From Pelomyxa schiedti (taxonomy: Eukaryota > Protista > Evosea): a stretch of 64,000 nucleotides of DNA. Below the pieces are notes generated by a model. The model saw only the letters and a list, made by a program, of their open reading frames with translations. It had not been told where the DNA came from and did not search any database. How positions within the stretch are numbered: position 1 is the stretch's first letter; each line of letters begins with the position of its first letter. Both the position numbers and the translations under genes were made by a program. Positions 2,477 to 43,383 of this stretch are shown piece after piece. The stretch lies in contig JAHLWZ010000310.1 in the NCBI GenBank assembly GCA_020536535.1, forward strand, positions 1-64,000, given 5' to 3'.

Positions 2477-5400
2477 TCACACCAACCCTGGGAAAGGCAG
2501 TTGAGTTGATGGAAATGTAAATGGAGAGGGTGACCAATACCATCGCTCTGTATCAACTGTTCAATTATCTGGAAAGCGGGTGATTCGGCAATGTTGAGTG
2601 AAGGCTGTTGTATTTTAAGTTCAAGGAGCTGGTCCAGCTGCACCCGGAGTGCTTTGATAAGAACCTTTGGGTACAAATAATTAAGAATGTGGAGGGTATG
2701 AGTAATAGGGAGGTACTGCAATTCTTGGTGTTGCATGGAACTTGATCCACTTGTTTAGTACAATAAATGCACCACTGTGATGAACTTCGATTGTTCCACC
2801 TCCAAGAAGCAGTAAGCTATAGGCGTTTACCATAGTGTTTTCTCTGTGTGATGTGATTTGGAGTCGAGTTGAAAGAGGAGCTGAGTTGTGGTACTTGATA
2901 AATACTTTCCCAGATTTCTGTGTTTTACTCAGATAAACAAGCCATGGAGTTTCAAATACACCATATACAAAGTTGACAGACTGAGGATGCAGGAAGACCC
3001 TCTCTATCAATCTGTTAAGCTGAAGTAGTGTATGTGCAATTAACACACCCCGTGTTTGTAGAACAAACTTTAACTGTTGTGGCAATGGATTTTGCAGTAC
3101 CGCTCCACTACGAGATTCTACAAACTTATCCAGGGGGGCATCCACTCTTACTACATTTGGATACAAACCAGCACAGACAACGGCCTAGGCAGGAAATCAG
3201 CTGTGATGTTTGATTTGTGTGGGAAGGGTCATACACGCAGGGTTCGAAGGTCTTGCCCATTCCTGTTGTGGGTGGCAAGTGCACTGTTGCTGGCTGTGCT
3301 CTTGGCATTCACACATTCGTTTAGAGCCCACACAGGATCAAGAAAACCAATATCGGCCATAAGTGTTGCAAGCTGTTTCCTGGTATCAAATATCTCCTTG
3401 AGAACACCAACAGACAGACCATTCTGATAGAGCACTCAGTGAGTTCAAAGAAAGCAACAAGCAATCTGTCACTTACTTTTGAAATATAATCACTATCTTT
3501 TCGCTGAAGACGTGACTCCAGCCATCCATTGTATAACCGTAAGTTTACAATGGAGTCACTTTTGCATCCAGCAAGAGTGATTCTTGCCTTATCTCCACTC
3601 TGTAGAGCCCTGCTGAATAAAAAAAAAGAGAGATGGAGAACTCACTGCCCGCTTCTCGATTGAGGAAAGAAAAATAGAGCGGCTGACACTAAGTGATGCA
3701 GCCATTGTGAGAGTGGCATCGGTACAACCGAGAACAACACCAAATATGAGCATCTTCCCGATAAGAGGGTCAACGGGAAGTAAAGCTAAATGGTGGCCCT
3801 ACAGAGTCCTGTGTGAGTATATATGAACTTCGATTTGGTGGGGAGCAAACAAGTGGTGTCAGAGAATCAGATCCACAATTTACTGATTGGAGGTAGATAA
3901 ATAGAAGGAAAGTTGGAGTATTAGGGAGAAGTAAAGGTATAGTACTAACCAGCAGCAATCTCTCGTAAAAAGTTCATGGAACCAGTAATTGCAGCAATGG
4001 AAGGAGGAGTTGGAGCAGATAAAAGAACTTCGGCAACAGAACCTCCCAGTGCCAATTTCATCACAGACAAGCAAAGAGACTGAAGAGATATGTTAAGAGA
4101 TAAGTAGAGATAAGTATGGAAATTCTCACCTCAATCGGAGCTCTTAAAATCTCAGGAAGATCGGAATTTACAAGTTTGGAGGGAGCAAACAATTGTATGC
4201 ATTTACCAGGTCTTAAGCGTCCTGCTCGACCCATTCGCTGTCTGAAAAGAGTTCACATATTTATATTGCTAGCCAGTTCCATACTTTGCACTGGACAGAG
4301 AGATCCAAGTTTCAATCATTGTTGATATGTGTGTCTCAGAGTTGTAATGCACTACATTGGCACGGCCAGTGTCAATTACAACAGTTGTATCATCGATTGT
4401 AATCGAACTTGTGAAAAGAGTTAAAGGGGAAATAAATCCCTCCTCACTCTGCTACCTCTCAGCAATGTTGGTTGATAAGATCACCTTGATTAAGCCAGGT
4501 GGTGCGGGTAAAAATATTCTTTNNNNNNNNNNNNNNNNNNNNNNNNNNNNNNNNNNNNNNNNNNNNNNNNNNNNNNNNNNNNNNNNNNNNNNNNNNNNNN
4601 NNNNNNNNNNNNNNNNNNNNNNATCGAACTTGTGAAAAGAGTTAAAGGGGAAATAAATCCCTCCTCACTCTGCTACCTCTCAGCAATGTTGGTTGATAAG
4701 ATCACCTTGATTAAGCCAGGTGGTGCGGGTAAAAATATTCTTTGTTGTCCTGGTGCAGGTAAATTATTGTATGGGAAAAAAAGGAGTAAGGTACTCACTC
4801 TCTGTAGATAAAGACGAGTGGAGTGGTAGAATAAACAGCTTAGAGACAATTGATAACTTCCTTTGCAATGCAATTATATCTGCCATCCCAGGTAAGAAAA
4901 CGAGTATGGAACCACAATCATGGAGGTTGTTGTCTGTACACCTAGTGTGCCACTTTAGCGGTGGTTATTGGGTCCCTGCTCAGCACAGACCACAAAATTA
5001 CTTTTTCAACTAGCTCTAAATCAACCCTCTCTCGTTTCCACGACTGAACGCCTGGTTCAGTGTGCTTTGCATCCCCAGTTGAATTCAAACTCGTCGAGGT
5101 GCTGAAAGATATTCCACAAGCTTTTCTCACTGTATAAAGATCTATTGTACTGACAGGAAAAACTTGCCCTGGTATTTCAATACATTGAGCCCCACAAAAA
5201 TAGTTTCGCAGTTCAGAGATATCCACTGTGGCACTCATAAGTACTACCCGTAGGGCTAAAGGTAGTGTCAATAGAATCTCAAGAGGAATTTCTTTAAACC
5301 ATGGTTTTGGGTAAGCACCCTCTTTAATAAGAGCAACAAGAAGTCAGTGTCAATATCACGTTCATGAACCTGAATGAGAAGTGTGAGTATAAATTATTTG

Positions 5401-11203: not shown

Positions 11204-12329
11204 TCAGCAGCATTTTTTCTCCCTTTCAGTTCCAGCCACCTTTACAGTGTCTTTTGGGGGAGGGGGATTATTCTTCAGTTTCACAGCCAATGTTCTCGCA
11301 AGTGATTCAAAAAGTTGGTCAATACCTGCAGACATGTTTATAGTCGAAACAGGAGTTCAGAAAAAATACCTTCACCTGTTTTAGCAGATGTTTCGAAATA
11401 GGGTATCTTGGTGGCGTATTGTAAACTAGCAACAAACATCTGGCCTTGCTCAGCTGTTACTACTCTCCGAGGAGCATCAATTTTATTTCCAACTACGGCA
11501 ATGGCTAGTTGTCTTGGAATCAGTGGCAGGAACAACAAAAAAGAGAGAGAGGAGGGCAAGATATACCAATTTCGCCATTCACATGAGTTTTTATATCTAT
11601 AGATGTTTATTTCTGAGGAAGTTTCTTGAAGATGAAGAACCTGTGAACCAATCGTTCACGTCATTAAATGTTGTAGAATCAGACACATCAAACTAGAAGA
11701 ATTTGGAAGAAAAGAGAGAATAACAATGCTGTACATACAACAATAACTGCAGCTTGTGCTCCTCGATAATACCTTGGAGTTTTAGAAAGAGAATTCACAA
11801 ACATAGATAAGTGACAGTTTATGTTAAGGGCGAGGTTGGATGGAATGATACATAGGAGTCATTGACCGAAATTTCTCTTGTCCAGCAGTATCCCACTACA
11901 CATGTCAGTATTCAATAGGTACAATGGAAGCATACAATCTGCATGGATATGTTATTTATCCCAAACGTATGTTGTTAGGAAACCACCTGCAATTTCACTT
12001 GCATGTCTCCTACAGTACTGAAAAAATAATAAAATTAATCATAATAAGAAAGAAAAAAAAAAGGGGGTCAACAAACATGGATTTTGACAAAAAAGAAGCA
12101 CCAATTGTTGCCAAGTATTCGGTAGAAAATGTTTGATTCACAAATCTACCACTCACGCTGGTCTTCCCAACCCCTGCGTGTCATGTCCGTTACAAAGGCA
12201 CTGCCCACCACCACGCACGCGATTGTGGGACGACAAAGCAAGTAAAAGGGGAAAACCAAGCGAAACCATACCCGAGCTCCCTATCAACACAATTTTCGCC
12301 GCTACGCTGTTGGGATTACCGTGCGACAT
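11204..12329 (-). CDS. Rab GTPase (Rab5/21/22-like), includes a 3-nt exon
   Basis: GSSGVGKTS, TIGASFLSK, KLQ|I|WDTAGQEKFRSMTPMYYRGA, GNKID, ETSAKTG, C-terminal KKCC*. Confidence 0.92.
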
Positions 12330-38373: not shown

Positions 38374-38981
38374 GTGTTGCGCACACAAGTTGGGTGTGTC
38401 TGTTGCTTGTTTTTTTTTTTTTGCTCCTCTATTTACTCACGGTGGTGGGTTGGGTTGCTCGGGAGACCAAGAGAGGGAGAGATCACGATGAACGACGATG
38501 ATCTGCGGTGACGAAACGGCGAACGAAAAAGTGCTTTTCTGAATGTTTTGCTGTTTCGGTTCCTTTGCTTTTTCTCCTTGTCTGAACAAAGAGAGGAAAA
38601 GAACTCCGCGAAATTCCAAATGGCCAGTTGGCACTGATAAGGTCATGATGCCGGCAGGGCACAGCACAAGCAGAACAAAGCCCTAATTGTCCCCGGTGCC
38701 CTGTTGAGGACTTACCTTGTTCTCTTTCCGCAATGGATTCAACGGACACTTCGAGTGGTTGTGGAGGGAGGAATTTTTGAGAGGGTGGTGCCGATGTACG
38801 CTCCAAAGGATTTCAGGTGTCAAATTGTGATTGTGATTTGATTGGCACATCGAGATTCAAAACGTCTGGAACTTTTGTTCATTTCTTTTCCCCGACCGTC
38901 GATTAATCGCTTGCGTGTCGTTTGTCGTGTCGGTGCTCCGGCGGGTCGTTTTTGAGCTCTAAGATCTCACGGGATCGCACG

Positions 38982-41900
38982 ATGGCAACGACACTGCAAC
39001 AACAGGTCTGTTTATTGTAGTTGTTTTGAATGACTACAAACCCTCTCTCTTTTTGCTGTTCAATAGGACCCCCTTTCATCATCCTCTGGTACTACGGGCA
39101 CTACCAGTGGTCGTTCGTACGAGAGTGGGGGAAGCGGCGGGGGCGTCGGCAGTGGCATTGGTAGTGTCTATGATGCACCCTATGGAATTCACAAGCACGC
39201 GAGGATGGGAGATGCGAATGGTGTTATGGCTTGCCTGCTTAGGCACGATGACATTGATGTGGTATTATGCCCTTTGGTTCGTCTCGATTTCTAACATTCC
39301 TAAAGCAGGTACACCTACTTTCACTTGTGACGTTTCTTTGACTTTTTTTCTTTTAAAATTCTCTTTGGTTGCCAATTGCAGCTGGTAGTCTTCATTCCTC
39401 ATTTATTTTGTTTTTAAGCAACCATTAGCCTGTATGTTACTCTGATTTATGAACAATACCCTAATTTTTTTCTTGCTATATGGTTATTCTGTTTTTAGGA
39501 TGTACGCTTTTCTTTAATTTACTGTTTTGTCTAACCTTTTTTTTTTCGTAGCCTGTATGTTCCTATTCCCTGTTCCTCTTGTTAACTTTTGTGTAGTGGG
39601 TATTCTCCCTTTATTTGACTTATTTCTGTGTCTAACTTTCATTTGCCTCTGGATCTTAAGTTCAAAAACGTATTCCCAATTCCTTTGTAATAAATGACTT
39701 TCTCATTGTTCACAAGGGGGTAAAGTTGCCTTTTTTTTTGTTTATTACTGACCTTAGTTTCCCGTACAACTCTGTACTTTCTCAGCCTGTATGTTTACTT
39801 CTCTCACCTTTTACACCTCTAACAAGTTCCATTCCAGAGGGTACCCATTTTTCCTCACTTTTTTTACAATATTAACTTCATTGTGTTCTCGCTTCAAATA
39901 TTTGTAGATGGTATGAGTGTATTTCTTGCAATCTCTAAGAATAAATAGGACACAGCCTTGCACATAGCATGTAGGCTCAATAATTATGATATTGTGAGAC
40001 TTCTACTTTCCCATGGCGCTTCAACAACAATTAAAAACTCTGCCCAAAAAACACCTCTGGACGTGTCCTCAAAGCAGTTTAATGAAAGAGTTAATGGTGG
40101 GTATTGAACCATTCAATTTGAATCTAACCTTTGACTAGCCTTGATAATTGAGATTCAAAGGTTTCTTCTGTATTCCCATTTTCAAACACAAACCCTGTCC
40201 ATCCAGTGATGTGACCAAAAACAAAGAAGGAATTGTAGTTGCAACACCTGCTGCAAGGCCCGTCCAAGAAGTATCATCACCTAGTCTCTCTCAAGAGAGT
40301 TATAGTCCCATCATTGCACCACAAACACCTCCACCAGTAGCATCTCCAAACCCATCACCACAGCCAGAGTTTGATTCCTCTCGATCATTTACATCAGATG
40401 AATGCATGGTACTACATAATGTTGATTTCATATTGCATTCTCACCGTTATTATTAGAATAAGAAAACCGATAAGCATACAGACCCAGAAGGAACAGGGAT
40501 GATTCCAAAAGTTGAGAAAAGTGGGGGTGCCACCACGCCTACTATTGCTGACAGTCCACGAGACAGTCCTATGGGTATGGAAAGGAACAGAGCTGCATCA
40601 GCAATTGGGACTTCAGGAGGATTATGGGATATGAAGATGTATAAACCAATTGACTCTTTTCCAGAGGTACTTTGATCTCCGGCGGTTATCTCTCAAAATA
40701 TTACAGTTTGAAGATCCTACATATGCACCAGCAAAAATTGAAGAAACAAAAAAACAACAACCAAGTCAAGCTCCCCAACCGGTCCAACCAGTGCAACCAG
40801 TGACTCAAAAGGCCTTACTTACCCAACCATCAACATTCTTCAAAAAATTTTTTGGAGGAGCCATGGTATTTTCTTTCTTAAATGTGACACAACTAATTTT
40901 AAATTAGACTGACAAACGCGATACACCATCTTCACCAACAATACAACCCCAGCCAACTCCCCAACTCCCACCACCCTCACAAGCAGTTCAAACGCCTCCC
41001 GTGCAATGGGCAGCTACCACACTACCATCAACACCATCCCCTCAATTCCCACTACCACCAAAACCTGTACATCATGCTCCAGTGCTTGGTGTCAACAGAG
41101 CCAGAACATTCCCACAGAAACCATTGCCTCAAAATCCCCCTTTATCGCCTATTGACACAGAGACTACACACGAAAGATCCCATGCACAGCCACCTCCCAC
41201 ACCTGTGGCCGCACAACCAATTCCAGACAATCTTCCCACCACACAACCAGCCCTTAGCAACGAGGTCAGTACCCAAGAACCGCATGTCGATACTACTGCT
41301 ATGCCAGTACCCACCGACCCAAAAGCAGCAATGCCCTTGCAAGCTGATACACATGCTACTCCTGCAACACAGGAAGTCCCCACTCTGCCTCGAACCACTG
41401 AACAAATCTCACCCACGGTTGCACCTTCCCCCTCACCAGTACAAGTGCCGGATGCACCTCCGGTACAACCAGCCCTCACGCAAGTCCTTGAAGCAACCAT
41501 TACAGACGCCACGCCTCCTCAAGTACCTCGTGTTGCCATTCCAACTGATGACCCATCCGCACTTTCTCCGACCCTCCCACAGCTTCCTCCACCTCCCCTT
41601 CCACAACTTCCTATTCCCCCGCTTACCCTAGATATAGCTTTACTTCCACCTCCGCCTCCAGTTCCTACAGGCCTTGTTCAGCCTCTTGGTGTGGCACCCA
41701 CACCTCAAGGTTTACAGCAGCCGGGACACACACCAACGCAGATGGCACAGTCACCCTCACCTGTTCTCCACCACCATGGAGTCCAAAGGAATGTCCCACT
41801 CCCCCCAGGCTGGATAGAACGGAAAGACCCCAAAACGGGGGCATTTTACTTTGTAAATACAGTAACAAAGACATCACAGGTACCACCACAAATCTCTTTC

Positions 41901-43383
41901 GTCTTAACTAATTGAGGCAGTGGGCCAGGCCAACCGCTCCCGCTTCCAAACCATGTATCTTTCTAGTCCCAAGATATATTAAATTCATTTTAAAACTTCT
42001 CAATAGCTATTCCACTTCCTCCTACACCTGTACAGCGGCATCAACCACAAGAGGATTCACAAAATCATCATTTGGCATCATCTGAGACATCAACTTTGGA
42101 TGAAATACAACAAAAACTGGAGTTGTTGAAACAAACTGAATTATTATTGCAACAAAAACAAGTATGAGGTCTGAATTTGGTGGCTTTTTAATCAATACTA
42201 GGAAGAACTCGCTCGAAAAGAACGGGAGCTGGAAGCACGGAAAAACCTAGAGGCAATTCGATCAGCTCAACCAAATTGGCAGATTAATTTTAGCGATCTG
42301 GTATTACAAGAAAAAATAGGAGAAGGAGGATACGGCGAGGTACTTAACTTTCAGTTTCCAATGCCTTCTAGGACTAATTTGTATGAAGGTATATAAAGGC
42401 ACATGGCAAGGCACAGTAGTTGCCATAAAAACTCTGAAGGGATTTGAGTCCTCACTGAAAGAAATTGCCTCTTTTACGAAAGAAGTGTCAATTCTCAGGT
42501 TGATTTCTACTTACATCGCACTTCTGACATATAAAAGGACCTTGCACCATCCAAATTTGGTGCTATTCCTTGGTGCCTGTACTGCCCCAAAACTCTGTAT
42601 GGTTTCAGAATTCATGCACGGTGGAAGTTTATTTCAATTACTGTACGTGATCACCACCATCCCTTTGTTGACCACAATAGTTATAAAAAGAAAGTGGTAC
42701 CCACACCTCCAAGAAGACAGATTCTAGCTCTAGATATGGCACGAGGATTAGCATACCTTCACAATTGTCATCCACCAATTATACACAGGTAGAATTTTCG
42801 TATCAACTTATCATAAGAATATTCTGGCAGAGATATCAAGAGCCTTAACATCCTCTTGGACGAAAAAGCAGAACACGCTAAGATATGTGATGTTGGACTT
42901 GCTAGGGTTTTTGATGATGACACCGCCTCACTTATGACGAATGCCGTTGGTACATTCTGCTGGATGCCTCCGGAAATGATGGTGTGCCATATCCAGTTAC
43001 TCGTCGTCGATTAATGTCACACAGAAAGGAGAAAAATATAACGAAAAGGCGGACGTGTAGGCTTTCTCTCTCCGAGATGGTGTAATACCCCTATTAACCG
43101 TTTTCCCAGGTACAGTTACGCTTTAGTAGTAACAGAGATGATTACCGGGAAACTCCCGTTTTCCGGGCTGGCACCGGCACAGATAACACTCAAAGTGGCA
43201 GTCTCACAAGAAAGACCACCTCTTCCCACCTCGGTACATCTCTTTCTTAGACTCTTTACCAGTTCTCACTCTTTTCAGTTGAATCACCAGTGGCGGGAGC
43301 TTCTAGTTGCATGCTGGGCCCAAGACCCAACCACAAGGCCCTCCTGCATCGAAATCATTCAGGCACTCACCAGCATGACGTAG
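38982..43383 (+). CDS. Ankyrin repeat-proline-rich-WW-coiled-coil-TKL kinase, containing a micro-exon array
   Basis: ANK (IHKHARMG; DTALHIACRLNNYDIVRLLLSHGA; KTPLDV). WW (LPPGWIERKDPKTGAFYFVNTVTKTSQ|WARP). Kinase (IGEGGYGE|VYKG, VAIK, HHPNLVLFLG, HR|DIKSLN, CDVG, GTFCWMPPE, DV|YSY). Confidence 0.9.
39262..39948 (+). other. Array of 11 micro-exons (ten 3-nt, one 9-nt) separated by 12 phase-0 GT-AG introns
   Basis: AG|exon|GT at 39306-08 CAG, 39382-84 CTG, 39429-31 CCT, 39499-501 GAT, 39552-54 CCT, 39597-99 TGG, 39661-69 TTCAAAAAC, 39717-19 GGG, 39786-88 CCT, 39838-40 AGG, 39908-10 ATG. Introns are 38-73 nt and pyrimidine-rich. Confidence 0.85.

Follow-up and report, generated by a model that had tools for sequence, protein, structure and literature searches.

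Is the T-rich stretch of 687 nucleotides (nt) that separates two ankyrin-coding exons of a kinase gene in the amoebozoan Pelomyxa schiedti one ordinary intron, or is it a row of codon-sized exons, and in the latter case does such a row serve to vary the protein that it encodes? The question is raised by positions 39262-39948 of the DNA analysed here (the window), which comprises positions 1 to 64,000 of the forward strand of contig JAHLWZ010000310.1 in assembly GCA_020536535.1. It is suggested here that the stretch is, with high probability, a constitutively spliced and evolutionarily old micro-exon array in a gene for an ANK-WW-TKL-type kinase. The array is a conserved working gene structure, and not a proven generator of diversity. 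The P. schiedti assembly (52.4 Mb; 52,367,397 bases in 5337 scaffolds) was obtained from seven micromanipulated cells, and its genes have 7.43 introns on average (PMC8887013). A literature search for micro-exons linked to Pelomyxa or the Archamoebae found none, and PMC8887013 makes no mention of exons or ankyrin.

Between an upstream exon that ends at 39261 (...DDIDV) and a downstream exon that starts at 39949 (DTALH...), the stretch (45% T) resolves into eleven micro-exons and 12 GT-AG introns. Ten of the micro-exons are single codons framed as AG-NNN-GT, with sites at 39304, 39380, 39427, 39497, 39550, 39595, 39715, 39784, 39836 and 39906. The first six of these are CAG (Q, 39306-39308), CTG (L, 39382-39384), CCT (P, 39429-39431), GAT (D, 39499-39501), CCT (P, 39552-39554) and TGG (W, 39597-39599); the last four, micro-exons 8 to 11, are GGG (G, 39717-39719), CCT (P, 39786-39788), AGG (R, 39838-39840) and ATG (M, 39908-39910). 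Between the two sets stands micro-exon 7, which encodes FKN at 39661-39669 and has the only AG-9 nt-GT site of the array (39659). The introns measure, in order, 44, 73, 44, 67, 50, 42, 61, 47, 66, 49, 67 and 38 nt and together are 47% T. All twelve array donors, that is the eleven that follow micro-exons and the first at 39262, begin with GTA, as against seven of ten in the other introns of the gene; the 3' ends are AAG, CAG or TAG, and a branch-like YTRAY motif is present in at least one copy in nine of the twelve, lying 11-34 nt from the acceptor in seven. Every junction is in phase 0, none of the micro-exons is a stop codon, and the pieces spell Q-L-P-D-P-W-FKN-G-P-R-M. In ten of the introns the length is not a multiple of three, and retention of nine would bring in-frame stops into the mRNA. 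The ten AGNNNGTA sites compare with a mean of 0.27 and a maximum of 3 in 2000 dinucleotide-preserving shuffles of the 687 nt, and other 700-nt stretches of the window, on both strands, have at most 4 each. The site counts, coordinates, intron lengths and phase given in the original prediction, which was made from the sequence alone, were reproduced exactly on recomputation.

The array was compared with RNA in the form of assembled contigs (X1-X3) from three single-cell libraries of one sample and one study, which were aligned to 38600-42600 together with one DNA run. The DNA contig covers this interval fully at a depth of 26 and has the array intact, whereas RNA depth falls to zero across 39270-39939. 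Coverage of the upstream exon by the RNA contigs runs from 39071 or 39076 to 39261, where they break, and each contig then jumps to 39948/9 with extra letters between. The insert in X1 is exactly the eleven micro-exons in genomic order (39 nt; the aligner set the last G of micro-exon 11 on 39948 and so reported 38 letters). X2 differs from this only by a synonymous change from C, the base in the genome and in X1, to T at the final base of the 9-nt micro-exon. X3 has the same T and lacks exactly micro-exon 5, all the other pieces being present. A competing in-frame 6-nt candidate exon at 39758 is unused in the RNA. Ten further introns of the same gene, of 40-52 nt and with GT..AG ends, are also supported by RNA, and the downstream exon has one sole 100% match in the assembly, from which it follows that the RNA did not come from a processed or intron-free copy. 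The array is spliced into mRNA with all of its pieces in genomic order. The claim that the stretch is a micro-exon array and not one intron is therefore borne out by the letters in the RNA, the spliced sequence and peptide proposed for it match exactly, and neither direct joining of 39261 to 39949 nor retention of the region is seen in the contigs.

The full form is thus found in two of three contigs and a form shorter by one codon in the third, contigs being blind to rare forms and unable to separate a skip from an allele. The form in X3 is probably a skip at a single tolerant position, either harmless noise or a minor isoform, and with pieces of whole codons an occasional skip would cost one residue and no frameshift. 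It is also possible, although we regard this as the less likely reading of the two, that X3 represents an allele, micro-exon 5 being missing from one haplotype or a splice site next to it being disabled there. The three RNA libraries, the DNA run and the assembly disagree at single bases, namely at 39669 (the last base of micro-exon 7), 40376, 40674, 40862, 40983, 41178, 41354 and 41723, which points to several haplotypes in the sampled cells and is consistent with an assembly pooled from seven cells (PMC8887013); position 5 is, moreover, one that varies among paralogs of the gene. However, X2 and X3 share the T in micro-exon 7 while only X3 is without codon 5, and a third haplotype would therefore be required; the array is also intact in the one DNA run examined.

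The position of the array in the protein helps to explain why its pieces are needed. The downstream exon (39949-40096, forward strand as are all features of this gene) is present in the RNA contigs and encodes the second ankyrin repeat, which begins with DTALH. Pfam Ank (PF00023) matches the translation of 39949-40095 with E = 7e-10 and 39.1 bits against a cut-off of 21.1, covering profile positions 3-32 from residue 1, so that the match sets in immediately after the array, in agreement with the proposal that the array lies in the ankyrin hairpin of an ANK-WW-kinase. The upstream exon (39067-39261) contains a Gly/Ser-rich N-terminus and a first ankyrin-like repeat; alone it gave no Pfam match, and the corresponding ANK exons of the paralogs can be aligned with it. 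By our own reading the turn between repeats 1 and 2 has 14 residues before the Thr of TxLH, compared with about 8 in the Pfam Ank consensus. The hairpin loop encoded by the array accounts for 13 residues, and the hairpin exceeds the canonical ANK turn by about 6 residues. Direct joining of 39261 to 39949 would leave 1 residue in a turn that normally has about 8, and an ANK module of normal build thus requires the micro-exons.

Analysis of related loci in the same genome proved informative as to the age of the array. A search with the downstream exon returned eight loci, and an array is found at the equivalent place on contigs C1151 and C814; the other matches, two on C165 and one each on C1401, C635 and C530, are ordinary ANK genes in which the loop lies within one exon. 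Both paralog arrays have twelve micro-exons that keep the order of the window array, FKN being divided between a 6-nt exon for FK and a 3-nt exon for N, and their loops read Q-L-P-D-Q-W-FK-N-G-P-R-M and Q-L-P-D-S-W-FK-N-G-P-R-N. In C814, too, the Ank profile begins at the residue after the array. Across the three genes, six of the 13 codon columns are identical, five differ synonymously only and two change the residue. Micro-exon 1 has the identical codon in both paralogs; micro-exon 3 is CCT in one and CCA in the other, micro-exon 9 is CCG in one, and micro-exon 10 is AGA in both, all of these being synonymous, whereas micro-exon 11 is ATG in one and AAT in the other. Comparison with the paralogs also supports micro-exons 2, 4, 6 and 8, each of which is present in the RNA contigs. 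Codon 5 (P, Q or S) is the only variable position within the first twelve loop residues, and is also the codon absent from X3.

The loop has 11 of 13 residue columns invariant, compared with 25 of 76 in the flanks (7 of 27 upstream, 18 of 49 downstream; Fisher p = 0.0006). Loop identity among the three loci, the only ones to share the array, is 85-92%, whereas identity in the flanking ANK exons is 26-47% and the introns cannot be aligned. The downstream exons of C1151 and C814 are 67% identical to each other and either is 43-47% identical to that of the window gene. Homologous array introns are no more similar than non-homologous ones, which indicates that the duplications and the layout are old. 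The greater conservation of the loop than of its flanks, with changes at five codons that are synonymous only, shows purifying selection on the loop and on the complete peptide. In these comparisons no other part of the ANK module is conserved as well as the loop, which behaves like a fixed binding or structural element and not like a variable one. Given that the array is carried into mRNA and that both layout and peptide are kept in divergent paralogs, the loop is best regarded as a conserved functional surface. A profile search of protein representatives with the downstream ANK exon was dominated by giant multi-ANK proteins, among which no orthologs could be distinguished. The upstream exon gave no match in a length-filtered search for homologous proteins, in a collection that does not include these RNA contigs.

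Small-scale changes within the array were also considered. The three proline micro-exons (39426-39441, 39549-39564 and 39778-39795) share tag or cag, then CCT and gtatgtt, over 16-18 nt that are 89-94% alike. It is possible that position 5 was altered in the window lineage by a small conversion from micro-exon 3 or 9, the codon and donor there being different in the paralogs. These CCT+GTATGTT repeats may equally be explained by a proline codon followed by the donor hexamer GTATGT, which recurs in all three arrays. A recent tandem duplication within the window array was rejected, as similarity between its introns is at the level of shuffled sequence (mean identity 0.56, compared with 0.52 in shuffles).

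The three-gene subfamily is not alone in the P. schiedti genome. Matches to the upstream ANK exon of C418 (L039 4458-6460) occur at 28 loci, so that a second ANK-kinase family has at least 28 members. Behind most of these, chaining of the site pattern gives 4-19 candidate single-codon exons with conserved ends and hypervariable centres rich in Tyr, Gly, Phe and Leu, and in C418 the array introns are mutually alike (mean 61%, maximum 83%). C851 (L072, reverse strand 2734-3830) has about 17 single-codon candidates and C176 (L040 5022-5604) at least 10, in both cases between two ANK repeat exons of genes unlike that of the window. All arrays observed follow the end of one ANK repeat and precede the TxLH of the next. 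The C418/C328 family, C176 and C851 thus share with the window array the organism, the position before T-A/P-L-H, the AG-NNN-GT grammar and short T-rich introns. They differ from it in being longer (up to about 20 codons or more), in varying between paralogs in both length and sequence and in being recognised by pattern, whereas the window array has a fixed length, a conserved peptide and unrelated introns. A scan of the genome for runs of such sites, as had been proposed, was productive in one respect only: the T-rich matches that adjoin ANK exons are real arrays, but the bare pattern (three AGNNNGTA sites 30-60 nt apart) is not enriched, with 73 matches compared with 148 in a reversed control, and a match on C1564 proved not to be an array. 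From these comparisons it seems that the window array belongs to a wider class, as one of its old and fixed members, and that cassettes are duplicated as the younger members grow.

The original prediction knew of no described tandem run of single-codon exons, but truffle genes are cited as having them. In the accounts given by PMC9815663, PMC3689799 and PMC4986451, which cite Iotti et al. (2012, Fungal Biol 116:261), the expanded NACHT-ANK (nank) family of Tuber melanosporum has 'dozens of 3 bp mini-exons' or 'tens of codon-sized microexons', and alternative splicing diversifies the protein. On these accounts the likeness is close, since both have runs of many in-frame 3-nt exons in ankyrin-repeat genes, from which any piece may be omitted without a frameshift, and the window array shares with the nank type consecutive 3-nt exons at canonical splice sites that are joined into mRNA in an ankyrin-repeat region. 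In contrast, the nank genes as so described encode NACHT receptors of the NLR type in a fungus and form an expanded, polymorphic family that diversifies by alternative splicing, whereas the window gene is an amoebozoan ANK-WW-kinase gene, with no NACHT domain among the Pfam matches of ten exons, and belongs to a conserved subfamily of three members with RNA mainly of the full form. The expanded, fast-evolving family is thus a feature that the window array does not share, but the C418 family does fit it. The design of the codon-sized array therefore has a fungal precedent, and what differs here is its occurrence in the Amoebozoa, in a kinase gene, in a small conserved subfamily and with mainly full-form RNA. 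The architecture of codon-sized exons is in this way separable from its supposed purpose of diversification, being kept here under purifying selection, and both the hypervariable arrays of P. schiedti and the truffle nank genes may be set against the window array as a control.

This comparison also raises a more speculative possibility, which we consider improbable. Skipping of single codons may be used and not only tolerated, in which case some cells or conditions would drop codon 5, and perhaps others, thereby altering the length of the ANK finger. The P. schiedti arrays would then be a second, independent invention, in Amoebozoa as well as Fungi, of a splice-coded, DARPin-like variable loop, and the three-gene subfamily would be its oldest and partly frozen member.

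Full diversification, in which micro-exons are independently included or skipped and many loop variants, up to 2^11 combinations, tune the binding specificity of the kinase, had been the first inference of the original prediction and is in our view very unlikely. All pieces are multiples of 3 in phase 0, so any subset stays in frame; X3 is without exactly one micro-exon, the truffle genes are reported to diversify in this manner in the accounts cited above, and a family with hypervariable loop arrays exists in the same genome. Against this, two of the three contigs are complete and the sole variant is one codon short, the missing codon being the single tolerant position, as expected of harmless splicing noise. 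The loop also outconserves its flanks in three old paralogs, with five codons varying only synonymously. Constitutive splicing, which had been put forward as the alternative, is on the evidence of the contigs and of paralog conservation the better reading. Schistosome micro-exon genes (MEGs) have exons of 6-36 nt that make up most of a secreted protein, and their alternative splicing provides antigenic variation. The window array resembles them in its tandem, symmetric (multiple-of-3) small exons, which make in-frame skipping possible. It is unlike them in having exons of 3 nt (one of 9) that encode one loop of a cytosolic kinase only, 39 nt of more than 3 kb of coding sequence with other exons of up to 972 nt, and no signal peptide is evident by eye at the N-terminus, nor is variation seen.

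How might such an array be spliced constitutively? With introns of about 40-70 nt (38-73 nt across the gene), each intron may be recognised as a unit (intron definition), in which case exon length would not be limiting. In vertebrate splicing, simultaneous assembly at the two sites that flank an internal exon is impeded if that exon is very short. An exon of 3 nt would leave no room for two spliceosomes at once, and with an AG acceptor and the next GT donor only 3 nt apart, the adjoining introns are expected to be removed sequentially, one by one. The accurate joining of ten consecutive 3-nt exons indicates that the spliceosome works with almost no exon between introns, and the array is a natural substrate for studying the recognition of splice sites 3 nt apart and the order in which they are used. 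Recursive splicing at ratchet points, as in Drosophila Ubx and other long introns, likewise uses juxtaposed 3' and 5' splice sites for ordered, stepwise removal, and leaves zero nt behind. The likeness lies in the juxtaposition and in the removal of a long stretch in steps; the window sites differ in that each contributes 3 or 9 nt to the mRNA and in that the introns concerned measure 38-73 nt. Isolated micro-exons are known from Drosophila homothorax (micro-Ex8, 3 nt; PMC7392893) and from plants (1-15 nt; PMC8831610). These also illustrate that exons of 3 nt can be processed by spliceosomes and are overlooked by annotation pipelines, but they are single or in small clusters, whereas in the window eleven in a row build one loop. 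Gene finders that call the stretch one intron would give a protein with a broken ankyrin module. As to origin, by analogy with what the younger arrays seem to do, duplication of 'codon plus intron' cassettes in the ANK hairpin probably generated the array, which would then have been fixed once the loop acquired a conserved partner.

It might also be asked whether the introns themselves are what is retained. The twelve obligatory and sequential splicing steps could form a regulatory device, a delay or quality gate on kinase expression that would account for the keeping of the introns, and 12 of 13 intron positions are indeed kept in the three paralogs in spite of saturated change in intron sequence, most introns being out of frame or stop-bearing if retained. 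However, passive retention would be enough in a genome that is intron-rich throughout (PMC8887013), and the intron between FK and N differs between paralogs, so that the layout is not strictly fixed; we give the idea hardly any credence. That the stretch is one ordinary 687-nt intron with AG-NNN-GT sites by chance can be dismissed, for although parsing from sequence alone is ambiguous, with 36 in-frame AG..GT chains fitting through the region, the excess of sites over shuffles, the retention of the same pieces in paralogs and, decisively, the predicted letters in three RNA contigs speak against it.

Several points weigh against the constitutively spliced, old array as the explanation favoured here. 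The RNA support consists of three assembled contigs of one sample and study rather than of raw reads; such contigs show the presence of a form and which form is dominant but conceal rare isoforms, so that 'constitutive' is to be taken as dominant and not as exclusive, and in one of the three codon 5 is missing. That the paralog arrays are spliced is deduced from homology only, 8 and 2 chains of 13 codons being possible in them, of which those closest to the window loop were taken, and the comparison of conservation is one of three paralogs from the genome of one species. The splicing order, intron definition and an origin from cassettes are putative, and the window sequence itself does not show the last of these, its array introns having no mutual similarity.

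The rest of the gene was read from exon translations and Pfam, exon by exon. Its layout is a Gly/Ser-rich N-terminus, two ankyrin repeats, long Pro-rich exons, a WW domain, a coiled-coil-like exon and a TKL-type kinase. Pfam on ten exons gave only Ank, WW and kinase matches, the exons at 40139-40865, which lay outside the scan, being Pro/Ser-rich by eye. The WW domain (41799-41954; PF00397, E = 2.3e-10, residues 298-324 of exon 40908-41879) has an intron at 41880-41920 inside it and an RNA-supported joint. The protein kinase domain (TKL-like) extends over about eight small exons from 42202 to the stop codon at 43383, with RNA joints up to 42536. PK_Tyr_Ser-Thr and Pkinase match the exons at 42539-42646 and 42832-42981, the single-exon scores being 26.2 and 30.7 bits for PF07714 and 41.5 bits for PF00069, each of which is to be read as per-exon and not whole-domain scoring, and the translations show the glycine loop, the catalytic-loop Asp and a DVG motif. 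Among the paralogs, C814 (L043 6106-7088) weakly matches RhoGAP (E = 3e-4) and SH3 (E = 5e-4) in the region that separates its ANK module from its WW domain, and C1151 (L042) has RhoGAP-like sequence by eye; RhoGAP and SH3 are not seen in the window gene, which has its Pro-rich exons there.

Small exons occur elsewhere in the window. Two in the same gene, of 22 nt (40139-40160) and 34 nt (41921-41954), are supported by RNA, and the second of these splits the WW domain. On the minus strand, a lone exon of the form cag-ATT-gta at 11936-11938 apparently encodes the Ile that joins ...KLQ to WDTAGQ in a Rab-like GTPase, as judged by eye, which suggests that 3-nt exons in the P. schiedti genome are not limited to ANK loops.

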